In this document: positions 2,792 through 26,764 of the stretch, one piece after another
How positions within the stretch are numbered: position 1 is the stretch's first letter
Layout of the letters: each line of letters opens with the position of its first letter
Virus record (IMG/VR): IMGVR_UViG_3300047558_000137
Span: 310,001-374,000 of that record
Strand: one strand, 5' to 3'
Length of the DNA: 64,000 bases
Notes under the pieces: model-generated
Databases searched by the model: none
Told to the model about the DNA's origin: nothing
Seen by the model: only the letters and a program-made list of their open reading frames with translations
Made by a program: the position numbers and the translations under genes

Positions 2792-2797
2792 GATCTA

Positions 2798-2826
2798 ATT
2801 GTAATTTATTTATCTTTTACTGTCAA
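2798..2826 (-). promoter_or_regulatory. Composite sigma70 + late promoter
   Basis: TTGACA-N17-TACAAT with AGATAAATAAA in the spacer; near copy of 2485-2513. Confidence 0.8.
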
Positions 2827-4259: not shown

Positions 4260-5365
4260 ACGTACTTCTTAAATTGTTCTAATGTTAAGTCAGGAAGATT
4301 AATGTAATCTGTGTCTGCATATTGTGGCAGTGCATCAATTAAGATTTTATACAAATCAAAATAGACTTCTTCTGCTAAACGATACATAATCATTCTGTTA
4401 TGCTGACGAATTTCTTGTGTTGGCTCAACAAGTTTTACATCAGATTTAACTAAGCGTTCAACTTCTGCGGCCACTGCACGTAGGCGCTCTCCTGGATACT
4501 CTAGACTATCGTAAGACTCATCTATTAGATCGCCAAACGTTTTAAACCCAAAGGCATGTAAGTGTCTAAGTGTATATTGCCCGCCTACTACAAGAAATGG
4601 ATGCCCAACTAATAACGGCTTGTATGTTTTCTCTGTTACAAAGGTTTCGTTAGGTGCTGTTTCCAATGCTAGACTAAATTCTGTGTGCCAGTAATGCGGC
4701 GGATAGAAGTTTTCAAATCTAAAATCTTCATGGAAGTTTGCATTGGGCCAATCAATGATTGGCTTAACATCTAGTTCAGTACGATCGGGAATTCTGTAAT
4801 CAATGAAGCTGTGGATGCTTTGATTTAAGATATCTCGTTCAATCAGTTCCTTAAACATTTCTTCTCTATTGTGTCGGCGTGTGCCATTTAAGAAAAGATA
4901 TTTAAAAGTCTTTGGAAATGTGCTGATACCATCTGCGGTATATGCAAGTCTAGCACGATTAAACTCTGTAGTTAGTCTATAGACAAAATACTTGTCTAGA
5001 TTGTGTTCAACGAAACCATCAACTGCCCTATTGCCTTGCTTAACCAAGTGAATAGGTATGCGTCTACGCACATAGTCCCTAGTGGGGTAATAACTACTGC
5101 TTAGTGTACTTTCACACTCACTTGGATAGTAGAAAATAATTGGAATGCCCAGGCTAGCACAACGATCAATAATTTGCTTGGCATAGTCGCCATCGTTGCC
5201 CGGGACTTCTTCAACAAAGGCATCTGTTATTACAGCATCGCCTGTAATATCTTCTGGATTTTTTACAATGGTGTAGGGTATGTTATACAGTTCCAGTACT
5301 GTAGTTAATAATCGATTTCTTGCACTACTAGGCCCAAGGGTCTGTCGAATTAAAAAATTTATCAT
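4256..5365 (-). CDS. Glycosyltransferase-like protein (GT10-like 'TEKT' family)
   Basis: FSLALET...FVTEKTYKPLLVGHPFL...GFKTF...IDESYD. Start moved to the ATG at 5365 because the ORF-track N-terminus runs through a tRNA. Confidence 0.6.
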   Translation of the reverse strand: MINFLIRQTLGPSSARNRLLTTVLELYNIPYTIVKNPEDITGDAVITDAFVEEVPGNDGDYAKQIIDRCASLGIPIIFYYPSECESTLSSSYYPTRDYVRRRIPIHLVKQGNRAVDGFVEHNLDKYFVYRLTTEFNRARLAYTADGISTFPKTFKYLFLNGTRRHNREEMFKELIERDILNQSIHSFIDYRIPDRTELDVKPIIDWPNANFHEDFRFENFYPPHYWHTEFSLALETAPNETFVTEKTYKPLLVGHPFLVVGGQYTLRHLHAFGFKTFGDLIDESYDSLEYPGERLRAVAAEVERLVKSDVKLVEPTQEIRQHNRMIMYRLAEEVYFDLYKILIDALPQYADTDYINLPDLTLEQFKKYV

Positions 5366-5371
5366 GTTATA

Positions 5372-5448
5372 TGGTGCGGATGGTGGGACTCGAACCCACA
5401 AAATTTGGCTTCTAAGACCAACACGTATACCAATTCCATCACATCCGC
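5372..5448 (-). tRNA. trnL: tRNA-Leu(UAG), short variable loop
   Basis: Acceptor GCGGAUG/CAUCCGC, anticodon arm UUGGU-CUUAGAA-GCCAA, 5-nt variable loop, A73, CCA. Confidence 0.9.
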
Positions 5449-5459
5449 GTATGTGATCT

Positions 5460-5488
5460 AGTATAGTGTATATATCTTTATTTGTCAA
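5460..5488 (-). promoter_or_regulatory. sigma70 promoter for tRNA-Leu(UAG)
   Basis: TTGACA-N17-TATACT, 11 nt before the tRNA. Confidence 0.8.
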
Positions 5489-7082
5489 GCGGGTATAGCA
5501 TTTTATAAAAATCTTTTGATGCAATACCTGTTAAACTTTGTTCTCTATACTTTTCACCCAGTTGATTAAAATACTCGATTGCCAGTGATTCAGTGTCCGA
5601 ATCTAATTCTGTTAATAATCCCTCTGTCGGTATATCATAGTATGTAGCCTGCGATACCCAAACACTCCTAGACCATAGATACTTTTTATTTCTAGCATCA
5701 ACAACATTTCTTCTACTTGTATTATTAATTAAATCATACAACATTTGAATCGAGTTTTGCTGCCTACCAACTTCTCTCATGTTTTCCCAATAAGGAGTAT
5801 CCTTTTTGCAAAGATGAAAGGCAAAACGAATACGTAGTAGTGTATCTGCCATACGCATATTAACATACTCGTTGAAGTCTTCTTTCCATGTGCAGTCTAA
5901 ATTTGTATCTGTTTTTAGATTGTCTACAACAAATTCAATTTTGCCTAGTGCAGTTGAAAAAGCATTAGCATCATACGCATCTACTAATCCATGACTTAGC
6001 CCTATTGTTATACAATTATTAACAAATGCTTTTTCTTGGTATCCAGGCTCCCATGAAATTAATCTAAAGTCTACATCTGTTTTACCAGTTTTTTGGTAAT
6101 ACTCATCCTTTAGTGATTCAACATTGGTTGTATGGCGAGAATTGAATACATATCCCTCGCCACTACGAACATCCATTGCTACACTAAAATGCCAACCTTG
6201 ATCCATTGCACGAATGTATGCATTGCTAGTTCGTTCGTTATCGTCGGTATATTTGTGTGGCCCAACAATGCATCTATCATTGAATGAATCATCTAGATGC
6301 TTAAACTTGTAGGGTAATTTTTTGCACAAAACTCTAGCGAAGCCAGTGCAGTCAAAATATAGATCTGCTGTTGCATGTGAGTCATCGTCTAATAGTAGAT
6401 AATCAATATCGCCATTTTCTTTTAACACAACATCCTTAATTGCAATAGGTAACTCTTTAACACCGGCTGGCTTGCCTACCATATTATGAACCACTGCCCC
6501 AATTCGCATAGCATTAATATGATATCCAAATGTGCCACGTGGATGATTCCATTGCCCGGTTGTTATATTATAAGGTATTCTATCGTTACGCGAATACCAA
6601 TAAGATTGGCTTGAATGTCCTGTATATAAATCCTTAGGAGTTCTATACTCTAATTGATTTAGTAGGCCTTTATTTTTTAAGTACAACCATACATCGAGCA
6701 TATCATATGGTGTTTGCGATTTATAAAAAGATGAATACTTTACTGCATCTATTCCACTCTCTTTAAAATCATTAAGTATTCCCATGTTAGGAACATCAGC
6801 ATGATTTGTGTAGAAAACTGAATTGCTGTTATCCCAGTCCTGAAACCGAGACCCTACTCGAAATATCGATCCCGATTCTTTAATCCATTTAATATCTTTT
6901 TCAAACCCTAGCACCTTGTTCATAAAAGATGATGAGTTCCATTGTAGTGCTTCTCCTACTCCCACCACTGGAGTTTTTGGATCGTATATAAGTGTTACGT
7001 CTAGATCTGGTCTATTACGCTTAATAGCAGATGATACAAAATTGCCGGCTGCGCCAGCGCCAACAACAATTATTTTTTTCAT
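5478..7082 (-). CDS. Tryptophan-halogenase-family flavoprotein (degenerate catalytic motifs)
   Basis: GAGAAG FAD motif, VGVGEA, GYHINA, ADLYFDCTGF, GYVF, IGLSHG. Start moved to MKKIIVVG at 7082, after the tRNA. Confidence 0.85.
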   Translation of the reverse strand: MKKIIVVGAGAAGNFVSSAIKRNRPDLDVTLIYDPKTPVVGVGEALQWNSSSFMNKVLGFEKDIKWIKESGSIFRVGSRFQDWDNSNSVFYTNHADVPNMGILNDFKESGIDAVKYSSFYKSQTPYDMLDVWLYLKNKGLLNQLEYRTPKDLYTGHSSQSYWYSRNDRIPYNITTGQWNHPRGTFGYHINAMRIGAVVHNMVGKPAGVKELPIAIKDVVLKENGDIDYLLLDDDSHATADLYFDCTGFARVLCKKLPYKFKHLDDSFNDRCIVGPHKYTDDNERTSNAYIRAMDQGWHFSVAMDVRSGEGYVFNSRHTTNVESLKDEYYQKTGKTDVDFRLISWEPGYQEKAFVNNCITIGLSHGLVDAYDANAFSTALGKIEFVVDNLKTDTNLDCTWKEDFNEYVNMRMADTLLRIRFAFHLCKKDTPYWENMREVGRQQNSIQMLYDLINNTSRRNVVDARNKKYLWSRSVWVSQATYYDIPTEGLLTELDSDTESLAIEYFNQLGEKYREQSLTGIASKDFYKMLYPLDK

Positions 7083-7090
7083 AGATAAAA

Positions 7091-7167
7091 TGGTGCGCCC
7101 GGAGGGACTTGAACCCGCGACCAATGGATTATGAGTCCACTGCTCTAACCAACTGAGCTACAGGCGC
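7091..7167 (-). tRNA. trnI: tRNA-Ile2(CAU), lysidine type (Met not excluded)
   Basis: Anticodon arm GUGGA-CUCAUAA-UCCAU; C4-G69 and C5-G68 TilS-type determinants; CCA. Confidence 0.85.
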
Positions 7168-11916: not shown

Positions 11917-13473
11917 TTATTTTGCCAAACCTGCTAAACGACGAATAAATGATAATGAATCATTTTCGTTTACAACTGGTTCATCCATCGTAGTATTACC
12001 AGTTTGGTTTGCGTTGTTAGGTGGTTCCGGACTTACTTGTGCAGTAAAGTTATTTTGATCTTGTGCATAGCTTGGTTCAGGCATAACAATGTCTGCTAAC
12101 AACTCTGGTTGGTTTTGTTCAATCCAAGTTTTTACAATACCACGCACATCAGCATCAGGGCCTTGGCCGCGGTCACTTGCGTAGTTCTGCACTAGCCGTT
12201 GTAATGAATCTTGATTTGGTATTAGCTTTTCTAAAGTAGATGTAGCGTCGATGCCATTGATGCCACCAGGTTGTGCCTGTGCAAAGAAATCACTTAGTGA
12301 TGCCGGTGCTTGTTCCATGTCTTCCAACATAGTCGATGCCCATTCATCTAACTCATAACTTAATTTACTTGCCGCTTCATTTTGTTGTTGCTTGTATGCT
12401 CTATATACATAAGGCAATGCTTCGTCAAAACGGCTATCGTATACTTTCTTAACCCAACGTTCTTTTAATGCTTCTACATCAACATCTTCTTCGATGTCGT
12501 TTGCTGCCACAAAGTTTTCTTTGTAGTCTTTAAAGTAACGTTCACTACGCAAATGACCAAGTGTTTTCTTTAGTTTCTCGTAGTGAGTAACTGCGGCACG
12601 GGTCATGTCGTTTGTTTCTTGGTCTTCAAACTCACGTAGTTTTTGGCTACGAACAAAGTGCTTCATTGCTGCCATCTCATGTACCATATTGTTGATATGG
12701 TTAGAGAAGTCATCATATAACGACCCGCCTTGTGTTAAATGTTCCGCAAGTGCATAGGCACCATTTAAATTTGTATGCTGTAATAGGAAACGTTCGCCAA
12801 GTTCAGTTTCTAAAAAGATGCTTTCAATTTGACGACTACGTGCGCCGCGAATTTCTTCATCTACTTTGTTCTTGTGACGAACTAGAATCTTGCATTTGCC
12901 TTTGTCGGCAAAACTGTTATAAGGGCGGCCTGGTGTGCCATATAACTTGCTTTCAGTAACAGGTGCTTCAGCTGAACTGAATGTATCATCTGTTTTGGCC
13001 TGTTGCTTAATATCTCTTATGTCTAGGTTACTCTTAGTAATATCACGTGTGTCAAAGCTCAATAGATTGCGCTTGGCAAACTGACGTAGATTACGCAGGA
13101 ACTCGTACCAATTTTTACGTTGGTCTTCGTCCATGTCTCTAGTAATGTTTTGTGCAAAATAAATCTTTACACTTGTTTCGTCAATCAAACTGATAGTAAT
13201 TTTACCAAATCCTGTTTCAGCAGCAGGTTTAACTTTTGCATCTGGCATCTTGTTTAGTAACGAATCAAGTTTGCTATCAATGCTACCAAACTCACCTGCT
13301 AGATCTTCGTCGAGTCCATCAACTTTGTTATCCACATAGGTAAAGTTAAAAAAACGTGCTTTTTCTGGATCACTAGTGGCGTTGGCTTTTTCGTCGCCAA
13401 GTACTATGTTAGGGAAACGGCTACGTATTTTATCAAAAAGGGCTGCTGCTACTGATTCAATTTCTTTAGACAT
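11917..13473 (-). CDS. Conserved hypothetical protein, probable prohead/internal virion protein
   Basis: 518 aa, late TAAATA promoter, C-terminus FIRRLAGLAK resembles the gp22 C-terminus. Confidence 0.6.
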   Translation of the reverse strand: MSKEIESVAAALFDKIRSRFPNIVLGDEKANATSDPEKARFFNFTYVDNKVDGLDEDLAGEFGSIDSKLDSLLNKMPDAKVKPAAETGFGKITISLIDETSVKIYFAQNITRDMDEDQRKNWYEFLRNLRQFAKRNLLSFDTRDITKSNLDIRDIKQQAKTDDTFSSAEAPVTESKLYGTPGRPYNSFADKGKCKILVRHKNKVDEEIRGARSRQIESIFLETELGERFLLQHTNLNGAYALAEHLTQGGSLYDDFSNHINNMVHEMAAMKHFVRSQKLREFEDQETNDMTRAAVTHYEKLKKTLGHLRSERYFKDYKENFVAANDIEEDVDVEALKERWVKKVYDSRFDEALPYVYRAYKQQQNEAASKLSYELDEWASTMLEDMEQAPASLSDFFAQAQPGGINGIDATSTLEKLIPNQDSLQRLVQNYASDRGQGPDADVRGIVKTWIEQNQPELLADIVMPEPSYAQDQNNFTAQVSPEPPNNANQTGNTTMDEPVVNENDSLSFIRRLAGLAK

Positions 13474-13486
13474 AATACTATTTAGC

Positions 13487-15046
13487 TCAAATCATTATGA
13501 ACGGCATGGGTTCAATAAAGGTATCTGCACTGTCCCGTAGTTCTTCATCCATTCCAGAATCATAACTTTGTAACATCTGAATCATGCGTATTGCCAGTAA
13601 TGTAGACATAACTAAGTCATCGTGTTCGCCTATTTTGGCTGCATAACTAGTGCCCGCAGCCACAAACGTTTTAAGTTCTGAAATTAATAGCTTACTTGCA
13701 ATAGCAATACGTTTGGTTTCTACTAGACTCTTTAACTTAGCACAGGCTGCTAATTTGGTTTTGTTTGTTGTAGTAAAACCTCTGCGCTGACGGCCTACCC
13801 CCATACGCTTTGGTTCTGTTAAGAATGTTCCTGGAATTGTTTCTTCGCCCAGTTCATTGATAGCAACTAATGCTGCTTCCCCAAGGGTGTTGTTTTCAAC
13901 ACTGTAATAAACGTTTGTTGGTCCTGCAATGTCTGCTAGGTATTGGCAAATTTCTTTCATAATAACAACTTGCCGTTGCACCAGAGTTTTATTATGGCTC
14001 CATTCAGCAACTTGTTTTAAGCCAGGTAATTCGAATACCTGTATAGCAGCCGGATCCGACCCAGTACCTAAACTTGGGTCGAGTGCAACTACGTAAGTAC
14101 AATCCTTACTTGGTTTTTTGTACCAACGAATCTGCCCTTGTTTTTCAATTGGGTCTATGCCAGCCATTTCAACTAGGTGCAAGGGATTAATTAGTGTTTC
14201 ATCAAAGATAATGAATTCACATTCCATTTCACGACGGAAACGTTCGTCCCCTAGTTGGGCCCGCATTTCGTCTGCCCATTTTTCATCACGATCCGGATGC
14301 TCGCGCCAATCACTGCGGAACGCTTTAAATCCATTTTTGCCCAATGGGGTTTCGTTACCATATTCATCAAATGTATTGTTGGCGCCGCGCCAAATTAAAG
14401 CAAATTGATCTTCGTCACTATTCGGAGTACTTGTAATAATACACTTACCACCAGTTGCTAGTGTAGGAGTAATAGCTGTCCAGAATTCGCTGGCAATGTT
14501 TGGTCTAACGAACGCAAACTCGTCACAGTATAGGAGAGAAATAGACATACCCCGTCCTGTGTTTTCTGTTGTAGTTTGGCTTACAATACGGCTACCGTTT
14601 TCAAAGTCCAGTGATCCTTTGTTGTAACTTGTAACACCAGCACGTATAAAGTCCGGGCAGTTCTCGTATGCGTAACGCACCCGTTGCATAATTTCTTGGG
14701 CGCCAATATACTTGTGCGCCGCAACCAAAATAGTCGAGTCTGGAACAAACATAGCATACCAAAGTAAGTAGCCTGCGGCACTTGTCGATTTACCAGTTTG
14801 TCGAGGCATTAGACTGATACTGTACCTATATCCATGATAGCTATCAATTAGTCGTTCTTGGTACTCAAACGGGACATATTGAATACTACCCTTAGTTGGG
14901 TGCTGTATGTAAAAGTAGTTACTCATAAAGTAACGTGGCCCAGTTACTGGATCTGCACACTTAGCAATTTCAATAATCTGCTGTTCAGTGTAAGACATCT
15001 TTTGATAAGGTGTCTTAATAATTGCAGTTTCTAACGGTTTACTCAT
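13487..15046 (-). CDS. gp17: Terminase large subunit gp17
   Basis: PRQTGKST Walker A, LYCDEFAF Walker B, ITSTPN, VALDPS, HDDLVM. Confidence 0.96.
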   Translation of the reverse strand: MSKPLETAIIKTPYQKMSYTEQQIIEIAKCADPVTGPRYFMSNYFYIQHPTKGSIQYVPFEYQERLIDSYHGYRYSISLMPRQTGKSTSAAGYLLWYAMFVPDSTILVAAHKYIGAQEIMQRVRYAYENCPDFIRAGVTSYNKGSLDFENGSRIVSQTTTENTGRGMSISLLYCDEFAFVRPNIASEFWTAITPTLATGGKCIITSTPNSDEDQFALIWRGANNTFDEYGNETPLGKNGFKAFRSDWREHPDRDEKWADEMRAQLGDERFRREMECEFIIFDETLINPLHLVEMAGIDPIEKQGQIRWYKKPSKDCTYVVALDPSLGTGSDPAAIQVFELPGLKQVAEWSHNKTLVQRQVVIMKEICQYLADIAGPTNVYYSVENNTLGEAALVAINELGEETIPGTFLTEPKRMGVGRQRRGFTTTNKTKLAACAKLKSLVETKRIAIASKLLISELKTFVAAGTSYAAKIGEHDDLVMSTLLAIRMIQMLQSYDSGMDEELRDSADTFIEPMPFIMI

Positions 15047-15106
15047 AAGTATTTTTCATATATAATATAAGTATATTTAACTGTTATCAGTCAAAAAGAA
15101 ATCAAA

Positions 15107-15691
15107 ATGTCAAATACTCTTTTACTCAATGCAAACTATGATCCAATTTCGATTCTGCCACTGAGCGTAATCAATTGGCAACATGCACTAAAGTTGTACT
15201 TCTTAGATCGTGTTACGATTATAGAATCCTACGACGATTGGGTAGTACGCAGTGAAAAGCTCACTATCAACGTGCCCAGCGTTTGCGTGACTAAAGAATA
15301 CTTTAACTACAAAAGAGCAGTTAAGTTTAGTCGTGCCAACATGTATCTACGTGATTTGTATACTTGCCAATATTGTGGCGAAGTATTTCAAAGTACAGCA
15401 CTAACCATCGACCACGTGATTCCACGTATGGCTGGCGGTAAGACTAACTTTGAAAACTGTGTAACTAGTTGCAAGCCATGTAACCATCGCAAGGGTAGCA
15501 AGCTGATGAAGCCACTGCGTGAGCCTTATAAGCCTGATTACTATAGTTTGGTTGCTAAATGGAAGGATCGCAAGATCCATGTGCCAAAGGCATCATGGTA
15601 TCAGTATCTAGGTATTAAGAATCCTGCCCTGGCAGAGGACGCTGTTGATACTGAGGGTGCTTATCTAGGTAACTTTCGATTTGACGTCTAA
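15107..15691 (+). CDS. HNH endonuclease (McrA-like)
   Basis: RDLYTCQYCG...LTIDHVIP...GGKTNFENCVTSCKPCNHRKG. Confidence 0.92.
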   Translation: MSNTLLLNANYDPISILPLSVINWQHALKLYFLDRVTIIESYDDWVVRSEKLTINVPSVCVTKEYFNYKRAVKFSRANMYLRDLYTCQYCGEVFQSTALTIDHVIPRMAGGKTNFENCVTSCKPCNHRKGSKLMKPLREPYKPDYYSLVAKWKDRKIHVPKASWYQYLGIKNPALAEDAVDTEGAYLGNFRFDV

Positions 15692-16016
15692 GATCTCTAG
15701 CGTCTGCAAAGTTAATTAAAAACCATAAATCCGTCCCGGTCTTGGCGTTGTATTCACGTTCAAGTTCGCGACGGGTTTTTTCTTTTGGATTCTCTATTGT
15801 TCCAACTGGACTGGCTACACCGTATTCTGTACTGTTAGGAACGTTGTCCATTAAGCCTGCTACTGCACCCTGTAGGCCACCCGGAACTGGTGCTGTTTCA
15901 ACAATACCTGCTAATTTTTTAATTTCAGATAAGTCTGCGGCATCCATAACTGCATCTTGCTCACCTGTTTCTCCAGGCAGAACAAAGTTAGCACTTGTTA
16001 TACGATACTGCTTCAT
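15615..16016 (-). CDS. Hypothetical protein with scaffold-like EIKKLAGI motif
   Basis: 133 aa, ATGA-coupled to the upstream gene; convergent 77-nt overlap with the HNH gene. Confidence 0.65.
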   Translation of the reverse strand: MKQYRITSANFVLPGETGEQDAVMDAADLSEIKKLAGIVETAPVPGGLQGAVAGLMDNVPNSTEYGVASPVGTIENPKEKTRRELEREYNAKTGTDLWFLINFADARDLRRQIESYLDKHPQYQQRPLPGQDS

Positions 16017-16408
16017 TTCTTTTTAGATTTTAATTGAACTGGCCCGGGGTTGCGATGTGGACTATGTTTATGAGTATCTTCTGGCTCAGCACTTTTAGAC
16101 CACGGTTGAATTTTTTTAACATCGCCCGGAATTGTTGCGTCTGCCTGACGAAACATGTTGTATTCTTCTTCTGTATAAGGATGTTCACTGTTATACTTCT
16201 CAATCCAACTATAAGCATCCATATCAACTGGCTTACTAGGATCTTTACCATCAGCCATGGCAGTAGCCATCCATTTACGGTTAGCATAATTAACACGGTC
16301 ATATCCGCCGTCGTCGCGACTAACAGTTATACTTTTTTGCACCGCTTTGTGTTCGGGCTTTACTGTTCCATGGATATTTTCTGTAATGATAATGTCAGTG
16401 ATTTTCAT
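16013..16408 (-). CDS. Hypothetical protein, possible internal head protein
   Basis: N-terminus MKITDIIITE ends in an I-x-E prohead-protease-type site; TAAATA 5 nt upstream. Confidence 0.6.
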   Translation of the reverse strand: MKITDIIITENIHGTVKPEHKAVQKSITVSRDDGGYDRVNYANRKWMATAMADGKDPSKPVDMDAYSWIEKYNSEHPYTEEEYNMFRQADATIPGDVKKIQPWSKSAEPEDTHKHSPHRNPGPVQLKSKKK

Positions 16409-16416
16409 ATAAGTAT

Positions 16417-17175
16417 TTAGCGTAATTTTCTTAAAAAATAATTAGCAATTGCCATATGAGATTCTATAGATAGCTGGGATATTTTTGTACCCTGAGATGG
16501 CAAGTACGTAAACATACCATCAATCGGTTCTCTATTTCTGTTAATGATCAGCTCATGCAGCTCTGAACCAATTGATTTAGCAGTTTGTGCTATTAGCAAT
16601 TGATTTTTTCTATAGTTGTAGTTGTTACTTACCCAATCAATGTGGTCCCACCAATCAGTATAAGGGACTTCATTTATTTCTGAATATATACCGCCTTGAA
16701 ATTTTTTACTAACAAACTCTCTAGTAGAAAATCCGGGCCACAATATGCAAACATGTTTTACTGCCCCATCTAATGCTAACATTGCTTTAGCTAAAATACG
16801 GGCCATTCCATCAGGACTTAAACTAGGTACACTTAAATTAACTACAGTTTCTGATCTTTGATTTTGTATAAGTGATGAAAATATATTATTAAACTCAACG
16901 CCTCGACCCATTCCATCACTGTCACTTATAACTAAAATTAATTCTTTTGTTTTTAAGTCATCTAAGATGTAATCAAAATTTGATCTGTACCCTAGGTTAT
17001 TAAACGTATAGTTGATGCCCGCTTGTTCTAGTGTTATATCGTGTACATCTGGTCCTGTTAGTTGTATTCCATGGCGTGTCACAACTGCCCATGCAGGTGG
17101 AATTTCAGGTTTCCAATGTTCGTTAGGCAAGTGATCTTTGCCTAATAGCTGTTCTATTTGTTCTACTAGATCCAT
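16417..17175 (-). CDS. Degenerate SGNH-like hypothetical protein
   Basis: YTFNNLGYRS...ISDSDGMGRGV...VVNLSVP, same general family as 50772 and 52589. Confidence 0.5.
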   Translation of the reverse strand: MDLVEQIEQLLGKDHLPNEHWKPEIPPAWAVVTRHGIQLTGPDVHDITLEQAGINYTFNNLGYRSNFDYILDDLKTKELILVISDSDGMGRGVEFNNIFSSLIQNQRSETVVNLSVPSLSPDGMARILAKAMLALDGAVKHVCILWPGFSTREFVSKKFQGGIYSEINEVPYTDWWDHIDWVSNNYNYRKNQLLIAQTAKSIGSELHELIINRNREPIDGMFTYLPSQGTKISQLSIESHMAIANYFLRKLR

Positions 17176-17188
17176 GGAGTATTTAAGA

Positions 17189-17214
17189 AAAAAGCGAGCC
17201 CGGGCTCGCTTTTT
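17189..17214. terminator. Palindromic bidirectional terminator
   Basis: AAAAAGCGAGCCCGGGCTCGCTTTTT is a perfect palindrome. Confidence 0.8.
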
Positions 17215-17233
17215 ATTTGGGGCAAGTTAATAA

Positions 17234-19228
17234 TCAATTAACTTTTTTGATACTTTCGTATTCAGCAGCTAATGATGCTTCTAACGCTAGAATCGATTCG
17301 TCTGTTGAACGAACTGGTTTAGCTGGACGGTTTGGTTGCTGTGTCATACGGTTGTCACCTGGGCCACCGTACATGCTCTTTTCACCTGCATCGCCTTCGC
17401 CAGGGCCCATTGTGCTAGCATCCATGCTGTAATAATCTTCTTCTGGCTCATTGGCAAATTCTTCTTCGATGCCTTCGTCACCAATGCTTACCATTTCTGG
17501 TTCAGCTGGTTGAGACATAGCTTGATTGCTATCGCCAGCTAAGCCAGCAATCTTCAACATCTGCATTAGCTCGTCAACTGCACTGCCGTCTGCACTGATA
17601 GTAACATTCTTGTTACCGTCTGTACTTTGGTTTGTGTTAACAGAAATGTTGCCATCTTTTTCCATTCCTGGGACGCCTGGCATATCGCACTCATCCATTT
17701 CGTCGATGTCTACTTGTTTAACAGCATTGGTACCAGGAATCTTTTGACCGATTGCAATGTCGTCATTTTCTAGACCACCAGTGAAACGGTTACCTTCTTC
17801 TACTTCATCAGTGTCAAAAGTTTGACCAAATGCGCTAAATTCGTCACGGCCTGCTTTTTCCGCGGCGTTATCTTGTTGGCTAATGTATTCACCACGACTA
17901 GCTTCGTCCATGTCTGCTTCATCAATGTCTCCACGTAGGCGATCAAAATCGGCTGCTGTTAATTTACCTTTTGGTTCTGCAACATCTAAACGATCTTGAT
18001 TACCAGGTAAGTCGCGGCTTTCAGCAACATTCAATCCTGCTAAACGAGCTAGCTCATTTAGTTCAGCATCTTCCATTGTGCGCTTGTTCATAGTATGACG
18101 AGTTAATGCATCGCCTGTTGGGCCACCTAGTGCATCAATTGCCTTGTTAACACCACCAGCAACTGCGCCTGCAGCACGAGCAACAATACCAGGCTTGGCA
18201 GTAGGTGTTCTGAAGTCTGGGTTTAATGCCATAGCATCTTGACCAGCTGGGCCAGGTGGATATCCACGTGGGTTACCTACGCCGTCTGTAACAATCTTCT
18301 TACCATGATTGTGAATCTTTAAGAAGGCTTCTAGCTTGTCACTGCAATGACCTGTTTTCTTAAATGTGTTGATGTCTTGTTGTAGTTCAGACAACATTTC
18401 GCCAACAGTCATGTCAGTTTCTTTCATCATGTCAGCAAAGTTAATGCCTTCTTTGATGCTCTTAGCAATCTCATGCCCTTTAGAGACTACCTTCTTTGGT
18501 AAGTTATGTGCTGGCTTTGTGCCATAGCCTGCTTGCTTCTTAGCTGCTGCCATACCGATTGCATATTTGTTTTTCGGTGCTTCGTTTACGCTTTCGCCCC
18601 AATGTCCTGCATCGCCGGAGTCATTATGAGGATCTGCTTTACCTTTGATTTTGCGACCTTCTTTGCCACTAGGTGGGGTATCAGGTGTACGACCAAATGG
18701 GTCATTACTCTTAGGGCCGGACATTGGCTTTTCATTTGTGTCTTCTTTGTCGCGGTAACCATAGTCACCTTTGTGTACTTTACCTTCTTCCATGCTGTGC
18801 TCAGTACAAGTACCAGCTTCGCACATTGCACATTCTTCAACACTTTCGGCCCAACCTGCTGCTTGAGCTGCACGAGTCAATGAACCTTTGTCCATCTTAG
18901 AACCTTTAGCAATAGCTTGGTCAGCAACACTGGCTGCTGTTTGTGTTGTGTTTGGCTTCTTAGCCTGTGGCGCCATTGTAACTTTATTCATGTTGCGTGG
19001 ATCTAAATCTGTTGCTACCTTGCTAGCCAATGCGCCAAAGCCTTCAGCAAATTGGTGTGCTAGTTTAGCTTCAATTTTATTAACACCTTCTAGTACGCTA
19101 CCTTTGGCTTCTACGCTTTCACGTATTTGTTGCACCAGGGCATCATGCTTTTCTTGTGGAGTTGGCTTTAAAGATTCCAACTTGCCTAATATACTATAAA
19201 TGTTGTCGTGGGGGAAATTTTTGCTCAT
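17234..19228 (-). CDS. Low-complexity acidic protein, probable prohead core/internal protein
   Basis: 664 aa; many hydrophobic-x-E sites; ELARLAGL and MLKIAGL motifs. Confidence 0.55.
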   Translation of the reverse strand: MSKNFPHDNIYSILGKLESLKPTPQEKHDALVQQIRESVEAKGSVLEGVNKIEAKLAHQFAEGFGALASKVATDLDPRNMNKVTMAPQAKKPNTTQTAASVADQAIAKGSKMDKGSLTRAAQAAGWAESVEECAMCEAGTCTEHSMEEGKVHKGDYGYRDKEDTNEKPMSGPKSNDPFGRTPDTPPSGKEGRKIKGKADPHNDSGDAGHWGESVNEAPKNKYAIGMAAAKKQAGYGTKPAHNLPKKVVSKGHEIAKSIKEGINFADMMKETDMTVGEMLSELQQDINTFKKTGHCSDKLEAFLKIHNHGKKIVTDGVGNPRGYPPGPAGQDAMALNPDFRTPTAKPGIVARAAGAVAGGVNKAIDALGGPTGDALTRHTMNKRTMEDAELNELARLAGLNVAESRDLPGNQDRLDVAEPKGKLTAADFDRLRGDIDEADMDEASRGEYISQQDNAAEKAGRDEFSAFGQTFDTDEVEEGNRFTGGLENDDIAIGQKIPGTNAVKQVDIDEMDECDMPGVPGMEKDGNISVNTNQSTDGNKNVTISADGSAVDELMQMLKIAGLAGDSNQAMSQPAEPEMVSIGDEGIEEEFANEPEEDYYSMDASTMGPGEGDAGEKSMYGGPGDNRMTQQPNRPAKPVRSTDESILALEASLAAEYESIKKVN

Positions 19229-21186: not shown

Positions 21187-22683
21187 TTACTCGTAATAGC
21201 CACTGGAGAATACATCAAAAGACATACCAGATGGTGCGTTAAACAGATAATCAGAGTATATATTGGAAGATACTGCACCAGAGAATAGCTCACTTGCTGG
21301 TTTTGCAATATTCTCAGATACAAAACCTCCAATACTGTTAGAAATCTGATCAGATACTTTACCTACGTAGGCATTAATTGCAGTTGATGCATAACCTATT
21401 GCATATTGTGTTGCCATGTTTTGTACTGTTGCTAATGCAGCCTTAGGATTAGCAATAACTGATGCAGCCATACCAACAATAGATTGACCATTACTGCCAA
21501 GGCCCTTAGCAATGCCGCCAATAACCCCGTTAGCCAATGAACTAGCGGCATTATTAACAATTCCATAGCCTGCTGCCTGAAGTTGTTGGCCAACACTTTG
21601 ACTGCTACTTACGCCCCTGGCTAGGCTACCAAAACTAGGAACTGCAATACCACCATTGTTAACAACCGACCCGGCAGCAAATAATGTACTTTGATTAAAC
21701 ACTGAACTAAATGTAGTTGCACCGGTAAATGTTGCTGAAGATGTTGTGCCAGCAACATAGTAATAAGGGTTTCTTGTAGCAGGACTATCTGCTAAGTCCG
21801 TAATAGTGTCCGGTACTTGTTGTGTAGTTCTAGAACTGTTATCATAATGTAAATCAATGAACCCGCCAACGTTGTTTTCTGTAACATACCCTGTTAGATA
21901 TTTTACTGTTTCATATTGCACAGTCATGTCGTGTTGCATGAGATTGTTTTCTCCCATGGTATGATCGCCATGCTTGAAACTTGTAATGATTGGATTTATT
22001 AATTCGTATTCGCTAAACTGTCCTTGATACAAACTATAAATTCTAATAGCTTGTATGTATTGATATTCTTGATAACTGTTAGTTGAAGTGTAATAACTGC
22101 CAACTGGCATTGGGCGAGGAGTATATCCCCATTCGAAATTTGTACGGCTTTGATATTTGTGAGGTGCAGAATATGTTACATCATTATAATCTGGATCTCT
22201 ATAAAAGTAACTGTAGTAGTCATACCAAAAATTTCTCACGTTATCTGCCTGGTCGTCGTGAAATGAAATTGTTACTGGATCGTAATTAATTTTATTCTGT
22301 GTAATATTTTTACGATTGTAGGCATTGTGAATTTTTGTATCGATGCTAAACTTTGGTAGTGTAACGCTCTTAACAATTACACCAAGTTCTTGTGCTGCGT
22401 GATTGCTAACTGTACTAATCAATGGATTAAAATCAAATTCTACATAAAATAGAAATCCATATTTAGGACTTAGTCTAAATTGACTGTCTGTAAATATTCT
22501 AGCAGCGTGTTTGTAATCATGAAGTATTTCTTCTCTAGGGGCCGCGGCTATTGTCGTTTTTGCTGTGCTAGGATAATTATCTATACCTGTCAAAATTCGC
22601 TGAGGAGAGGAAGTTAAGTCGGCTTTAACACCTTTTGCATAGTTGTTAAGTCCAAAGACAGGGTTTAATACTTGGTCGGCCAT
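21187..22683 (-). CDS. Baseplate tail-tube initiator (gp48/gp54-like) with Gly/Ala/Ser-rich C-terminus
   Basis: Tube-family core VKSVTLPKF...YNRK...INYDPVTISFHDD...LINPII; next to gp19. Start set at the ATG 5 nt after TAAATA. Confidence 0.65.
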   Translation of the reverse strand: MADQVLNPVFGLNNYAKGVKADLTSSPQRILTGIDNYPSTAKTTIAAAPREEILHDYKHAARIFTDSQFRLSPKYGFLFYVEFDFNPLISTVSNHAAQELGVIVKSVTLPKFSIDTKIHNAYNRKNITQNKINYDPVTISFHDDQADNVRNFWYDYYSYFYRDPDYNDVTYSAPHKYQSRTNFEWGYTPRPMPVGSYYTSTNSYQEYQYIQAIRIYSLYQGQFSEYELINPIITSFKHGDHTMGENNLMQHDMTVQYETVKYLTGYVTENNVGGFIDLHYDNSSRTTQQVPDTITDLADSPATRNPYYYVAGTTSSATFTGATTFSSVFNQSTLFAAGSVVNNGGIAVPSFGSLARGVSSSQSVGQQLQAAGYGIVNNAASSLANGVIGGIAKGLGSNGQSIVGMAASVIANPKAALATVQNMATQYAIGYASTAINAYVGKVSDQISNSIGGFVSENIAKPASELFSGAVSSNIYSDYLFNAPSGMSFDVFSSGYYE

Positions 22684-22699
22684 AACAATATTTATCAAT

Positions 22700-22727
22700 A
22701 AAAAACCCGGCGTTTTACTGCCGGGTT
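22700..22727 (-). terminator. Intrinsic terminator after gp19
   Basis: AACCCGGC-8 nt-GCCGGGUU plus U run. Confidence 0.8.
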
Positions 22728-22752
22728 AAATTTTTCATTATTCTTTCGAATA

Positions 22753-23370
22753 TTAGTTAATTGCTGATCCAGGTGTCTTTGTAACAACTGTACGGCTACC
22801 AACCCCACCGCCAACTGATTGAACTGCGTTATCAAACTTAATTGTTAATGCAATCTGCACAGGGTCGTTACTGTTGTATGCCATATCGCCCCAATCAACT
22901 TGGCTTAAGAAGCAACCATATAGGTCCCATGCTTCAAGTACGATTGGAGTACTAGCGCCGTTACCGCCGTCTAACACTTCATAGCTCATTTGGAATTTGT
23001 AGTTAATACCAGATGCTGCACTAGCTTGTTCTAAGAAATCGTATTGCTTTTGAACTTGCTCTGCAACAATCTTGCTAACTGCACCAGTAGAATCATCGCG
23101 TAAGTTTACGGTTGTTTCTTGCCATTCTGGTTTACCTTGTAGATATACTTTGCTGTTGTAAACATCAATTGTAATTGGGTTGAAGTTTACGTTCGGGCGC
23201 TTAATATCCACAACTTGTTTAGTTAACTCGTTCGTTTCGTTTGATACACCAAAATTAGTAAATGTTGCACGAAAACGATACTTTAATTTTGGCATCAACA
23301 AACCCTGGCTCTCTGAGCTTTGGTTATTTGCTAGAGGCACTGTAAATTTGCTTAATGATCCTGTTGCCAT
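22753..23370 (-). CDS. gp19: Tail tube protein gp19
   Basis: MPKLKYRFR...GKPEWQETTVNLRDD...WDLYGCF...IALTIKFD; follows the sheath gene. Confidence 0.9.
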   Translation of the reverse strand: MATGSLSKFTVPLANNQSSESQGLLMPKLKYRFRATFTNFGVSNETNELTKQVVDIKRPNVNFNPITIDVYNSKVYLQGKPEWQETTVNLRDDSTGAVSKIVAEQVQKQYDFLEQASAASGINYKFQMSYEVLDGGNGASTPIVLEAWDLYGCFLSQVDWGDMAYNSNDPVQIALTIKFDNAVQSVGGGVGSRTVVTKTPGSAIN

Positions 23371-23407
23371 TTGTTATTCTCCTGTTACTCTTATTTATCC
23401 AAACTTC

Positions 23408-26400
23408 TTAGGTAGAAGCTGCCCCTAAATTAGCGATTGTTCCAGGATTGTACAAGGCTATAGGAATGTAAATAAACTCAACATCACGCATTGGCTCAAC
23501 AGCAACGTCAACATATAGTTGATTGTTTGCAATTGCGCTAGATGTGTTATTGTTAGAGTCACAAATTACTAAGAAGTCATATAGACCGCGCTTGCTTAGA
23601 ACATCGTGTAACGCACTTTCAATTTGACGTGCAATAGTTTTTCTTGTTACAACGTCATTTGGTTCAAACAAGAAACCATTGCTGATTGTCTTGAAGACTG
23701 TGCGTAGATAGTTTTCTAGACGTACAACATTAATCTTGTTTCTAGAAGTTGTGTCGCCACTACGTGTTTCTTGACCCCAGATTACTAAACCTGTACCAGG
23801 CAATTGTGTAATTGGGTTAATATTTAATGAATATAGTGAATCACGTAGACCTTGGTTAATACCGTTGTGTACAAATGCACCAGTAGTTTTATTAATATAA
23901 CCAATGTCACTGATGTTGCTTACTAGACCACGATGTACACCAGCTGGTGCAAACCATTGATAGCTAACATTATCGTTGTACAAGAATGTACGTAGTACTG
24001 CATGACTTGCTGGTACTGCAACTGTATTTCCTGCTAGGTCGTTTGTTAAACCAGCTGGGTAATACACACCTAGGTATGGGCTAGCTGTTGCTAGGCCGTC
24101 ACCATTGGTATTGTTGCTCCAATTTGTAATGTCAGTGGTAGATGGTGCTAATGTCATTGGTGTGTCACCAATGATAAAACCAGTATTACCACGATCATTG
24201 TTTAACGTTACTAAGTTGTCAATTAGCTCTGGATAACCAGGTGCAACTAGCAAGTTAAAGTTGTAAGTTTCTTCACGAACGTCAATGTTACTATCAACTG
24301 CTGACTGTAAAGCTGCTACAACAATAGCACGTTGAGCTGCTGAACCTGCCTTCATAACACCGTTCTCATCTAATCCGCTATCGCTAACCCAAGAGTCAGT
24401 AATAGTTGGTGTGCTTGTTGGCAAACCTAATGTGTTAGAACCAGCTGGGAAACTTGCGGCGTTAAAATAGTCTGCTACAAATTTCTTAACGTTATAACCG
24501 CTGCGGCGTGTGTTAAACAACAAGATACCACGTGGATATAGTTTGTAGTTAGGTGCATCTAGATCTAGATAATCGCTAGTTAGCATATCAACTGTAGATG
24601 GGATGCCTTCATTGATTGGATCCACTGCGCCGTCTGCACTCCAACGTGCGTCAGCAAAAATGATACCATTTGAGCTTACGTGATCGGTGTTGTCTATTGC
24701 TACCCATGCGCTACCGTTATAACGATATAGACTTGGATAGTTTACTAAATCACTGCTGTCTAACCAAATATCGCCAGCTGCTAAAGCAGTACTGTCGCTT
24801 TGGCTTGTTGGCTGACTTGCGCTTACGATAACACCCATTGGGTCAGTGTTTCCTAATACATAACCGCGACTATCTGTGCCGGCACCTTGGTAGCCTTTCC
24901 AACCAGAACTAGTATTAACCATAATATCTACTTCGCTTGGATTGCTGTAATACCACAAAGTTCCGTCAACTGGGTTGCTAGTTGGGGCGCTCGCTTGGTA
25001 TGATATAAAGCGGTTTTGTCCTGTAAAATTACCAATATTTACAACATCGGTAATAGGGTTTACAGTGTATCCTACACGTTGGTATGGTACTAAACTTGTG
25101 TTATCTACTACAAATCCTGCATCTTGCAATGGTGTATCACTTACGTTTGTTAAAGTAACTTGGCCACCTAGTGCATGGCTGATAGTAATAGTTCCATTGC
25201 TATTAACCTCTGCAGATACATAAGGAACGTTGGCCGCTAAAATTGCTGTAACAAAATCTTCAGCTGACCCGCTGCTTAATGCAGGGATAGTTGCACTATT
25301 TGTTACGCCGCCTATTCCTGTTGCGCCAATAGTAAATGATCCAGTGATATCTGTCGGTGTATCACCTGTTCCAGATGAAGACACATTATCTGTTGATCCA
25401 CCTTGTACAGAGAATGTCAACGCATTATATGTAGTATCACCTACTAGATATGTTGCAACTGTTGTACCGTGCGGAATATTTTGGCCACCACCAGCTGGGT
25501 CTAAGTTAGCAATTGCGCTAACAAAACCAGTATACATAGAAACGCCAACTGAAGCCCAGCTGTCAGTTGATGCGTTGTATTTCTTCAATGAAGGATTAAA
25601 ACCGCCACCTGTTGATGTAGTTTTCCACCATACACTTCCTGATGGGCGAGGTTGAGAATCTGATGCGTACCAGCCACCTGTTGGCTGTTGAGCATAAGTG
25701 CCGTAGAAGAAATATGGGCAGTAGTAAGGGTTGCCTGAACCTACTGTAATTCCACAATTGTCCAACGGTGTATTTGTTGAATCAGATTCAACAAGAATTA
25801 GTTTACCGTCGGCTGATCCACCTGTACTTGCAGCTGAACTTGTTACATAGAATGACAAATAGCCGTCATTTACTTTTGCCTTAACACCAGTAATTGCTGC
25901 TGCGTTAACTGCCGCAGCCAACGCTGCTACTGTACCAGTGTTAAATGTAACTGTTGTACCGTTAACAGAAATAGTGCTAGCACCAGCTGTTAATGTTAGT
26001 GTTGGGTTAGCAACTGTACCTGTTGCAACTGGCAATGATAACTGCCACTCTGGGCTACCAACTTGTACCCAAACGTTAGGGCCTGGACCACCTGAGCCTG
26101 TTACAACTGCACTTGAACCAGTTTTGGAAAATAAACGAATGTAACCTAGTGGTTTAACGCTAGTATCTACTGCAACTAATGCATAGTCACCTGGCTTACC
26201 AATTGATGCAACTGGGGTAGCTACATCTGTTGTGCCGTTATATGTGCTATATGTAACCTTGTTACTATCTGTAACTACAATAGGATTAATATGAGTAAAT
26301 CCTGGTGTTGCAGAAGTATTATCTAACTCATACAAACCAAATTCAGTATTTGCTGTGTCTAGCCATAAATCGCCGTCGGCTACACGTCCAGCTGGACGAA

Positions 26401-26764
26401 CTGATGTGCCTGCTAATTGTGCTAAATCAACATCTGCACGGATAGCATACAATTGATTGCCTAAACCCAATGCGCTATATGCTGATAATAGGCCGTATTC
26501 GTTACGTTCGTCGCCGTTAATTGGTGTACCAGCTGAGCTCAATTGGAAGCCCGGTGTGCCCATAGCTGTTACCAAATCACGTTGACTTGTAAACGATAAT
26601 AATTTGCCAGCATTTGCTTTACTTGTGCCTACTGCTGGGCTATTGTTATATGTTTTGTCTTGTGCTGTTGCTAATAGTACCAATGGGACAGAGCCAACAT
26701 TTGAATTTACATATTGGCTTTGGTCATTAATGGAAATTTGAATTCCTGGTGAAACTAGTGCCAT
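23408..26764 (-). CDS. gp18: Tail sheath protein gp18 with large insertion
   Basis: MALVSPG N-terminus; NEYGLL; WFAPAG..RG; INPI; WGQET; INVVRL; FEPND; EFIYI. Confidence 0.93.
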   Translation of the reverse strand: MALVSPGIQISINDQSQYVNSNVGSVPLVLLATAQDKTYNNSPAVGTSKANAGKLLSFTSQRDLVTAMGTPGFQLSSAGTPINGDERNEYGLLSAYSALGLGNQLYAIRADVDLAQLAGTSVRPAGRVADGDLWLDTANTEFGLYELDNTSATPGFTHINPIVVTDSNKVTYSTYNGTTDVATPVASIGKPGDYALVAVDTSVKPLGYIRLFSKTGSSAVVTGSGGPGPNVWVQVGSPEWQLSLPVATGTVANPTLTLTAGASTISVNGTTVTFNTGTVAALAAAVNAAAITGVKAKVNDGYLSFYVTSSAASTGGSADGKLILVESDSTNTPLDNCGITVGSGNPYYCPYFFYGTYAQQPTGGWYASDSQPRPSGSVWWKTTSTGGGFNPSLKKYNASTDSWASVGVSMYTGFVSAIANLDPAGGGQNIPHGTTVATYLVGDTTYNALTFSVQGGSTDNVSSSGTGDTPTDITGSFTIGATGIGGVTNSATIPALSSGSAEDFVTAILAANVPYVSAEVNSNGTITISHALGGQVTLTNVSDTPLQDAGFVVDNTSLVPYQRVGYTVNPITDVVNIGNFTGQNRFISYQASAPTSNPVDGTLWYYSNPSEVDIMVNTSSGWKGYQGAGTDSRGYVLGNTDPMGVIVSASQPTSQSDSTALAAGDIWLDSSDLVNYPSLYRYNGSAWVAIDNTDHVSSNGIIFADARWSADGAVDPINEGIPSTVDMLTSDYLDLDAPNYKLYPRGILLFNTRRSGYNVKKFVADYFNAASFPAGSNTLGLPTSTPTITDSWVSDSGLDENGVMKAGSAAQRAIVVAALQSAVDSNIDVREETYNFNLLVAPGYPELIDNLVTLNNDRGNTGFIIGDTPMTLAPSTTDITNWSNNTNGDGLATASPYLGVYYPAGLTNDLAGNTVAVPASHAVLRTFLYNDNVSYQWFAPAGVHRGLVSNISDIGYINKTTGAFVHNGINQGLRDSLYSLNINPITQLPGTGLVIWGQETRSGDTTSRNKINVVRLENYLRTVFKTISNGFLFEPNDVVTRKTIARQIESALHDVLSKRGLYDFLVICDSNNNTSSAIANNQLYVDVAVEPMRDVEFIYIPIALYNPGTIANLGAAST

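Follow-up and report, generated by a model that had tools for sequence, protein, structure and literature searches.

How RaK2-like jumbo phages fill their T=28 heads with dozens of uncharacterized virion proteins is not known, and the locus examined here raises the question of whether such proteins could carry a common peptide signal for loading into the head. The window analyzed is a 64,000-nt stretch (positions 310,001 to 374,000) of the 374,314-bp jumbo phage genome IMGVR_UViG_3300047558_000137. An earlier note, made from the sequence alone, observed that a motif of the form (I/L)x(R/K)LAG(L/I) recurs at the end of a gp22-like scaffolding protein and in three other proteins encoded at 11917-19228, and, noting that C-terminal scaffold helices bind the coat protein in HK97-fold phages, proposed that it is a portable prohead-targeting signal that loads unrelated proteins into the head. 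In the current study, we asked whether the recurrence is real, whether it is conserved, and what it most likely means.

Results

The recurrence held on re-examination, as all five peptides that the note had described are present in four proteins. The scaffolding protein (373 aa; 54578-55699, minus strand) ends with NVFEIKRLAGLK, and its C-terminal tag, SQDNVFEIKRLAGL (54584-54625, minus), is followed by K and the stop codon. This gene does not lie within 11917-19228, but 35 kb away, between a gp21-type prohead serine protease (212 aa; 55714-56352, minus; PF03420, phrog_207) and a gp23-type major capsid protein (392 aa; 53374-54552, minus; PF07068, E 1e-97). With the gp20-type portal protein (57772-59481, minus; PF07230), these genes form a head module, so the scaffold gene occupies the position expected of a T4 gp22-type prohead core scaffold. 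The protein itself has no Pfam family, but it matches phrog_10922, its homologues are annotated as scaffolding protein in phage records, the UniRef name 'Scaffolding protein' is given for P0042, and at least 7,888 relatives occur in metagenomes. The 518-aa protein (11917-13473, minus), which belongs to a virion structural protein family (phrog_13484) and is encoded immediately downstream of the large terminase subunit (TerL; 13487-15046, minus; PF03237, phrog_36964), ends with LSFIRRLAGLAK; its tag, ENDSLSFIRRLAGL (11926-11967, minus), is followed by AK and the stop codon. The 133-aa protein (15615-16016, minus), encoded upstream of TerL, contains DLSEIKKLAGI at residues 28-38, within the tag DAADLSEIKKLAGI (residues 25-38; 15903-15944, minus), which is followed by I-V-E, a candidate protease site. 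The 664-aa protein (17234-19228, minus) is acidic (net charge -35), is the positional equivalent of PA5oct 0203 and of CBB_213 / RaK2 ORF050, and has two tags. Copy A, EDAELNELARLAGL (residues 386-399; 18032-18073, minus), includes ELNELARLAGL (389-399) and is followed by N-V-A-E, whereas copy B, AVDELMQMLKIAGL (residues 550-563; 17540-17581, minus), includes ELMQMLKIAGL (553-563); ELMQMLKLAGM recurs in orthologues.

To estimate how often such a motif would arise by chance, we searched the whole genome for [ILMV]x[RK][LI]AG[LI], which occurs 5 times in called genes, and only in these four proteins, against 0.23 +/- 0.46 (maximum 2) in 300 residue shuffles. A sixth match lies in a 56-aa ORF that was not retained in our gene call and that we take to be spurious. 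Since the pattern was defined after seeing the data, these numbers are inflated, and the independent evidence is conservation in orthologues. A 14-column profile built from 20 instances scored the five sites at 8.3-16.4 bits. The next hit in the genome, a 65-aa ORF with LAE in place of LAG, scored 8.0 bits, and everything else was below 4 bits. Because a profile search with the 14-column alignment missed the PA5oct instances, its first filter being too coarse for so short a profile, whole genomes were scanned directly. The frequency of the motif in non-virion proteins had been named beforehand as a test of the idea, and in genome-wide scans of seven phages the motif was absent from non-structural proteins.

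The tail closes the scaffold in seven distant isolate or reference genomes (this phage, PA5oct, Atu_ph07, Vibrio 2.275.O, XaC1, CBB, and RaK2). In the 120 listed close metagenomic homologues it is kept as NVxExx[RK]LAGL[KN], with variants in the six distant phages. It is conserved in homologues that are 33% to 100% identical, while the residues just upstream vary. In 80 related IMG/VR loci, the motif is kept in 34/34 orthologues of the 664-aa protein (322-1070 aa) and in 21/21 orthologues of the 133-aa protein, where A36 and G37 are invariant and L35 is nearly invariant in 22 sequences. In the 518 family it is kept in 54/75 by strict regular expression; a C-terminal [AS]G[LIMV] tail is kept in 60 of 72 distinct orthologue tails by inspection, whereas a profile threshold of 7 bits undercounts this family (18/75). 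By comparison, the motif matches 2 of 553 proteins from 20 neighboring gene families. The 518-family homologues of PA5oct, RaK2, CBB, and XaC1 lack the tail, so it was gained or lost as a module.

Apart from the motif, the carriers share nothing detectable. There is no cross-family BLAST similarity, and a profile-profile alignment (hhalign) of the 133 family with Atu_ph07 gp111 aligned only the motif. Megablast of 11917-19228 against phage records found no match, nor did tblastn of the 664-aa and 133-aa proteins, the relatives of which were found only by gene position and by the motif. The 133-, 131-, and 252-aa proteins are not pieces of a split terminase. In the AlphaFold (AF2) model of the 518-aa protein, residues 1-467 are folded, 468-505 are disordered, and 508-513 form a helix. 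A Foldseek search of the PDB with this fold gave nothing, a wide structural alignment search (VIA-align) gave Z up to 6.3 on generic alpha/beta domains, and BFVD gave only uncharacterized jumbo-phage proteins. The model of the 133-aa protein shows a helix at 26-35, disorder at 39-75, and a helical C-terminal domain at 77-119. In these modeled carriers, which did not include the scaffold, the tag is predicted to be a single helix of 6-10 residues, ending just before the Ala-Gly, on a disordered tether (pLDDT below 50 at 468-505 and 43-65), and not a helix-turn-helix domain of the P22 type.

All six non-scaffold carriers with published virion proteomics are virion proteins. PA5oct 0203 and 0235 carry the ESI-MS/MS flag, CBB_213 had 5 peptides (PMC5259590), and RaK2 ORF050 is annotated as a virion structural protein. 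Atu_ph07 gp111 had 2 peptides, and Atu_ph07 gp257, a NUDIX hydrolase (PF00293, E 6e-11) whose first 14 residues closely resemble that phage's scaffold tail, had 4 peptides and 43% coverage. The base rate of virion proteins is 93/461 in PA5oct and 131/714 in Atu_ph07. However, these data come from relatives only, do not separate head from tail, and derive from preparations that also contain terminase and other likely contaminants.

Finally, we observed T4-type (L/I/V)-x-E protease sites flanking the tag, a feature the earlier note did not see and which suggests that the tag is a removable propeptide. [LIVM]xE sites are enriched on the mature-protein side: 86% observed against 12% expected downstream in the 133 family and 55% against 20% upstream in the 518 family, with 100% at position -7 in scaffolds. 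This enrichment is not corrected for relatedness of the sequences, and these proteins are Glu-rich. Some tags, such as those of Atu_ph07 gp257 and gp111, have no nearby site of this type, and the scaffold itself is detected in CBB virions with 4 peptides (PMC5259590), so removal would not be complete. The capsid protein has a likely propeptide cleavage at KMLAE|NASGG, inferred by analogy with the T4 L/I-x-E site (PMC9026906), which would give a propeptide of 42 residues. In some relatives the protease is fused in frame to the scaffold and so acquires the same tail.

Discussion

Our results partly support the interpretation offered in the earlier note. The motif is a real, conserved, and position-independent module shared by the scaffold tail and otherwise unrelated proteins, but binding to the coat protein, residence of the carriers inside the head rather than elsewhere in the virion, and sufficiency of the tag for loading all remain inferences. 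We consider the motif to be a short linear docking peptide with the consensus h-x-x-h-x-[RK]-L-A-G-h, i.e., an amphipathic helix with hydrophobic residues at -9, -6, and -3, usually basic residues at -5/-4, then Ala-Gly and a final Leu/Ile/Val that caps the helix. It is the conserved C-terminal tail of the gp22-like scaffolding protein of the RaK2 / PA5oct / Atu_ph07 jumbo-phage group, and copies of it sit at the N-terminus, at the C-terminus, or inside several unrelated proteins. We infer that the tail makes the contact that holds the scaffold in the prohead, most likely with the inner face or N-terminal propeptide of the gp23-type capsid protein, and that proteins carrying a copy would be co-assembled into the prohead by mimicry. 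A complex prediction of the capsid protein with scaffold residues 324-373 gave ipSAE values of 0.07 and 0.04, which is evidence neither for nor against binding. In this view, the (L/I/V)-x-E sites that lie between the tag and the mature part of the carriers, and inside the scaffold's own tail, would let the gp21-type protease cut the passengers and the scaffold loose at maturation. What the analysis itself establishes is the motif, its conservation and specificity, its context in AlphaFold models, the enrichment of candidate protease sites beside it, and the virion presence of carriers in relatives; prohead targeting, the identity of the partner, and the cleavage are deduced from these. We give this reading a probability of roughly 0.6.

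An alternative, which we consider unlikely but which differs only in the partner, is that the tag binds the scaffolding core through scaffold-scaffold or scaffold-protease contacts, and that carriers co-polymerize with the core, as T4 internal proteins are thought to do through their capsid targeting sequence (CTS). T4 internal proteins co-purify with gp22 and are built into the core before the shell (PMC9026906), the protease's own C-terminus (EEVKRLIKDLKI) is a similar amphipathic helix, and protease-scaffold fusions exist in relatives. On the other hand, the extreme C-terminal tail of the scaffold is the capsid-protein contact in 80alpha (PMC6893505), as it is in P22 and herpesviruses, although nothing in our data discriminates between the two partners. 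It is less likely still that the motif is mainly a recognition or docking element for the gp21-type protease (a substrate exosite or degron) with no part in incorporation. An hxE site (h, hydrophobic) does lie at -9 to -7 inside the motif in 100% of the listed close scaffolds, 68% of the 133 family, and 41% of the 664 family, and flanking sites are enriched. However, the best-conserved residues are L-A-G-(L/I) and not the Glu, the 518 family has Phe at -7, the capsid protein, which is the main protease substrate, has no such motif, and T4-type proteases need only L/I-x-E (PMC9026906).

A role in DNA packaging, with the motif docking proteins on the portal or terminase, is also improbable. It is suggested by gene order, since the 133-aa gene and Atu_ph07 gp111 lie directly upstream of TerL, and the 518-aa gene directly downstream, and the small tagged protein could be a packaging factor or small terminase; in addition, the P22 scaffold also contacts the portal. 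Yet other carriers (PA5oct 0235, the Atu_ph07 gp257 NUDIX hydrolase, and CBB_213) lie far from TerL and are virion proteins, and the 133-aa protein had no small-terminase match in searches of Pfam and PHROG families. Chance recurrence of a common helix-capping sequence is already contradicted by the conservation data. LAGL-like tetrapeptides are indeed common (16 observed against 11 expected in this genome), and a DnaB-like helicase ends with KSMLAGLKKSD, but this end lacks the upstream hydrophobic pattern and falls below the profile threshold, and we treat it as chance. The extended motif, in contrast, is 20-fold enriched, is restricted to four proteins, is conserved in hundreds of orthologues inside otherwise hypervariable or disordered segments, and tracks virion proteins in four other phages.

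Shared or portable signals for head assembly have precedents. The CTS of the T4 internal proteins IPI-III and Alt is a short peptide that directs unrelated, rapidly evolving proteins into a gp20/gp21/gp22/gp23-type prohead and lies next to L/I-x-E sites of the gp21 protease (PMC9026906); the present tag would do the same, also occurs on rapidly evolving proteins, and lies next to candidate sites of this type. The T4 CTS is strictly N-terminal, about 10 residues long, and is not reported to be shared with the scaffold. The present tag, which is the scaffold's own tail, is N-terminal in the 133 family, the 69-80 aa proteins, Atu_ph07 gp111 and gp257, and PA5oct 0203, internal in the 664 family, and C-terminal in the scaffold and the 518 family, sometimes with 2-3 copies. 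In the staphylococcal phage 80alpha, the scaffold shares a C-terminal RIIK motif with the unrelated SaPI1 CpmB, which binds the same capsid-protein site (PMC6893505); there, the copy belongs to a parasite element and redirects capsid size, and the sequence is different, whereas here the copies are on the phage's own genes and the proteins end up in virions. In herpesviruses, the scaffold (UL26.5) and protease (UL26) share a C-terminal tail that binds the major capsid protein, brings both into the procapsid, and is then cut off by the protease. The protease-scaffold fusions in relatives of this phage repeat that layout, although the herpesvirus sharing comes from nested in-frame genes and not from independent copies on unrelated proteins. 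Encapsulin cargo-loading peptides target diverse enzymes to the inside of an HK97-fold shell by a short terminal peptide on a flexible linker, the same domain-linker-peptide architecture as in our models, but the consensus differs, the shell here is a gp23-type phage capsid with portal and terminase, encapsulins have no scaffold, protease, or DNA, and no evolutionary link is shown. PhiKZ-like jumbo phages carry many internal head proteins processed by a prohead protease, and 121Q, a member of the present group, gives a phiKZ-like bubblegram that suggests an inner body (PMC5646251; PMC7247149). No shared targeting motif is known to us in phiKZ-like phages, and their lineage and protease specificity (S/A/G-x-E) differ. 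Text searches of the literature for the peptide and for scaffold-tail or targeting motifs in these phages found no description.

A conserved tag shared with the scaffold tail would provide a concrete rule that predicts which ORFs are head cargo, link scaffold release and cargo release to the same protease, and offer a small handle for packaging reporters or enzymes into cultivable members such as PA5oct, CBB, RaK2, and Atu_ph07. Given the at least 7,888 metagenomic relatives of the scaffold, the rule would apply to a large and abundant environmental phage group. More tentatively, and at slightly less than even odds, the helix may be a general, position-independent head-loading tag of the whole RaK2 / PA5oct / Atu_ph07 group that works by copying the scaffold's capsid-binding tail and is released by the prohead protease. 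If so, the internal head proteome, including enzymes such as the Atu_ph07 NUDIX hydrolase, could be read from sequence, and foreign proteins could be loaded into these very large heads with a peptide of about 14 residues. Co-variation between scaffold and carrier tags was also considered as evidence, since RaK2 has LSGI in both its scaffold and ORF050, but it was rejected because environmental loci mix LAG and LSG within one genome.

Results

Genomic context

The window (bases 310001-374000) belongs to a single 374,314-bp IMG/VR virus record that CheckV rates 100% complete; the GC content is 40.7%. A T4-type head module is carried on the minus strand and comprises a portal (57772-59481; PF07230), a 351-aa acidic low-complexity protein (56365-57420), a gp21-type prohead protease (55714-56352; PF03420), a 373-aa protein in the gp22 position (54578-55699; phrog_10922) and a gp23-type major capsid protein (53374-54552; PF07068). 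The strongly acidic 351-aa protein contains Gly/Ser repeats (SGKSGSAQ repeats), and the genes at the same position in CBB (CBB_254) and PA5oct (0151) encode virion proteins by mass spectrometry. By the scaffold protein, the nearest cultured relatives are Pseudomonas phage PA5oct (42% identity), the RaK2-like phages CBB, RaK2, 121Q and GAP32 (33-35%), Agrobacterium phage Atu_ph07, Vibrio phage 2.275.O and Xanthomonas phage XaC1. The scaffold family has at least 7,888 relatives in the metagenomic protein collection, many of them 76-88% identical.

The large terminase (TerL) lies at 13487-15046 and is a single 519-aa ORF here and in PA5oct, whereas it is split into two ORFs in CBB, Atu_ph07 and XaC1 and carries an insertion of about 270 aa in RaK2 (889 aa). 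An HNH endonuclease gene (15107-15691, plus strand) lies between TerL and the gene for the 133-aa protein, with which it is convergent and whose 3' end it overlaps by 77 nt; it is present in about half of the related loci (44 of 80). An unusually long tail sheath (1118 aa) and two tail-tube paralogues (205 and 503 aa) lie next to the head-completion gene (21187-26764, minus strand). Six tRNA genes (Trp, Met x2, Ile-tat, Leu-taa and Leu-tag) occur at 1137-7167 on the minus strand, among which the tRNA-Ile(tat) call is unusually long at 91 nt.

Occurrence of the motif

An earlier note had claimed that a scaffold-type motif is shared by the gp22-like scaffold and by proteins of 518, 133 and 664 aa, and this observation held, since all five peptides on which it was based are present. 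However, the scaffold gene lies outside the interval that the note gave (11917-19228), while the other three carriers are inside it. In the whole genome, the pattern [ILMV]x[RK][LI]AG[LI] occurs five times in called genes, against 0.23 expected from shuffles, and all five instances also share hydrophobic residues at -9 and -6, counted from the last motif residue. A 14-column profile built from 20 instances separates the five sites (8.3-16.4 bits) from nearly all the rest of the proteome. The one exception is a 65-aa ORF at 8.0 bits that has LAE in place of LAG, and everything else scores below 4 bits. A DnaB-like replicative helicase (259076-260515 of contig C1 in the genome record G000, corresponding to 4076-5515 of locus L206; minus strand) ends ..KLKSMLAGLKKSD. 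This partial look-alike, with MLAGLKKSD at its terminus, does not fit the extended pattern and falls below the profile threshold, and we therefore take it as chance.

Conservation of the motif

The C-terminus of the scaffold was compared among seven distant phages. It reads ..FEIKRLAGLK in this phage, ..EELRRLAGIK in PA5oct, ..NDLKRLAGIKK in Atu_ph07, ..DRLTKIAGIRK in Vibrio 2.275.O, ..EMLASRAGIRK in XaC1, ..NEISRNAGISKNR in CBB and ..EELSILSGIIKK in RaK2. All 120 listed close metagenomic homologues end in NVxExx[RK]LAGL, followed by K or N in all but one, while the residues just upstream vary freely.

To examine the other carriers, we retrieved 80 IMG/VR loci around TerL homologues of 66-87% identity and counted complete proteins only. 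The motif is present in 34/34 orthologues of the 664-aa protein, which range from 322 to 1070 aa in length with 30-70% identity and usually carry two copies, ELNELA[RK]LAGL and ELMQMLKLAGM. It is likewise present in 21/21 orthologues of the 133-aa protein. In the 518-aa family, it was found in 54/75 orthologues by the strict pattern, and 60/72 distinct tails carry [AS]G[LIMV] within six residues of the end. By comparison, it was found in 2/553 proteins of 20 neighbouring gene families, both of them doubtful. Two orthologues of the 518-aa protein (12142-13542 of locus L125 and 1972-3396 of locus L185) stop at ..NITY / ..NMTY, exactly where the others continue into the tag-bearing tail, which is either natural loss of the tag or a stop or frameshift. 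The same loci hold further carriers with no homologue in this window, namely 69-80 aa proteins that begin MDDLDQIKQLAGI.. and large proteins with ELDEIAKLAGL. In the alignment of the 133-aa family, A36 and G37 are invariant and L35 is nearly so, next to a gap-rich, variable linker. In the 518-aa family, L513 and G515 are the only conserved columns in the last 130 residues.

Carriers in cultured relatives

Whole genomes of six cultured relatives were scanned, and in each the scaffold and one to three other proteins stand out from the background. These are 0203 (three copies, one at the N-terminus) and 0235 in PA5oct, CBB_213 in CBB, ORF050 (variant LSGI) in RaK2, XaC1_284 and XaC1_442 in XaC1, two proteins in Vibrio 2.275.O, and gp111 and gp257 in Atu_ph07. 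CBB_213, RaK2 ORF050, XaC1_284 and the Vibrio 411-aa protein are homologous and very acidic, with a net charge of -59 to -83. They sit after the head-completion gene, as do PA5oct 0203 (-68) and the 664-aa protein of this phage (-35). Across families there is no similarity other than the motif. The 518-family homologues of PA5oct, RaK2, CBB and XaC1 lack the tail, and the tag therefore behaves as a module that is gained and lost.

Predicted structure

The AlphaFold2 model of the 133-aa protein, built with 22 sequences, shows a helix at residues 26-35, which covers the first eight residues of the DLSEIKKLAGI motif and ends just before the Ala-Gly, followed by a disordered stretch at 39-75 and a confident helical domain at 77-119. 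The 518-aa protein, modelled with 54 sequences, is folded from 1 to 467, disordered from 468 to 505, and ends in a helix at 508-513, which is again the motif. In these models the tag is thus a tethered amphipathic helix, in which L-A-G-h looks like a glycine-based helix C-cap. Structural searches with the folded part of the 518-aa protein returned no informative relative.

Presence in virions

Every non-scaffold carrier for which proteomic data exist is a virion protein. PA5oct 0203 and 0235 are flagged ESI-MS/MS in the record of that phage, where 93 of 461 proteins are virion-associated (PMC7318152). CBB_213 was detected with 5 peptides and 18.9% coverage, and the scaffold CBB_256 gave 4 peptides (PMC5259590). 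RaK2 ORF050 is annotated as a virion structural protein. In Atu_ph07, where 131 of 714 proteins are virion-associated, gp111 was detected with 2 peptides (23.9% coverage) and gp257 with 4 peptides (43.3% coverage) (PMC6102473 supplement). The latter (2074-2520 of locus L207) is a NUDIX hydrolase (PF00293, E 6e-11, domain residues 49-128) whose first 14 residues, MNIDKLKKLAGIKK, closely resemble the scaffold tail of that phage (..NDLKRLAGIKK), and it is a candidate packaged enzyme. Absence of the carriers from proheads had been named in the earlier note as a refutation of the targeting idea, and six out of six in virions, against base rates of 10-20%, answers that test, although CBB_213 and ORF050 are orthologues and these preparations also contain terminase.

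Candidate protease sites

The N-terminus of the capsid protein reads ..RKMLAE/NASGG.. (slash, candidate cleavage point) just before the conserved gp23 core. This fits the T4 rule L/I-x-E (PMC9026906) as well as the 42 to 37 kDa processing reported for the 121Q capsid protein (PMC5646251). Around the tags, [LIVM]xE is enriched on the side facing the mature protein. In the 133-aa family it occurs within +2..+9 downstream in 86% of instances, against 12% expected, and the site in this phage is AGIVE/T. In the 518-aa family it occurs within -16..-10 upstream in 55%, against 20% expected, the site in this phage being PVVNE/NDSL, and in the 664-aa family it occurs downstream in 41%, against 20% expected. 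A further hxE sits inside the motif at -9..-7 in 100% of the 120 scaffolds, 68% of the 133-aa family and 41% of the 664-aa family. These figures are not corrected for shared ancestry, and the sites are inferred from sequence alone.

Discussion

We take the motif to be a prohead-loading tag that copies the scaffold's own tail and is probably removable by the gp21-type protease, a reading to which we assign a probability of about 0.6. The earlier note's interpretation, that the motif is a portable prohead-targeting signal that loads unrelated proteins into the head, is thereby partly supported. The motif, its conservation and the virion presence of carriers in relatives are shown, whereas loading into the prohead, the binding partner and cleavage are inferred. 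As to the partner, the capsid protein is favoured by analogy with the shared RIIK tail of the 80alpha scaffold and CpmB (PMC6893505). The single complex prediction returned no verdict. The tails of P22 and herpesvirus scaffolds offer a similar analogy. The main alternative is that the tag binds the scaffold core, as for the T4 capsid targeting sequence.

The principle is already known from the T4 capsid targeting sequence, shared scaffold tails and encapsulin loading peptides. What appears to be new is this particular motif, its sharing between the scaffold and several unrelated virion proteins, its freedom of position and its spread over a very large jumbo-phage group, none of which was found in the literature searched. 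Since 121Q shows an inner-body-like bubblegram (PMC5646251), the acidic multi-tag proteins are candidates for that structure.

The arrangement of the protease and scaffold genes in relatives also fits a targeting role. In four 90%-identity clusters of proteins related to window 54578-56352 (P0015, P0043, P0054 and P0064), the prohead protease reads in frame through a five-residue linker (QEKYP) into the scaffold's Met (..LIKDLKL-QEKYP-MLDAIKPLL..), giving a 587-588 aa protease-scaffold fusion that ends in the same LAGL tail. This matches the arrangement in herpesviruses and lambda. In this window, the two genes are separate and in different frames. The protease's own C-terminus (55714-56352, minus strand), ..YLQEEVKRLIKDLKI, resembles the first half of the tag (E-h-K-R-L) but lacks the Ala-Gly; the protease of PA5oct ends in a similar helix, and it may be a separate targeting helix.
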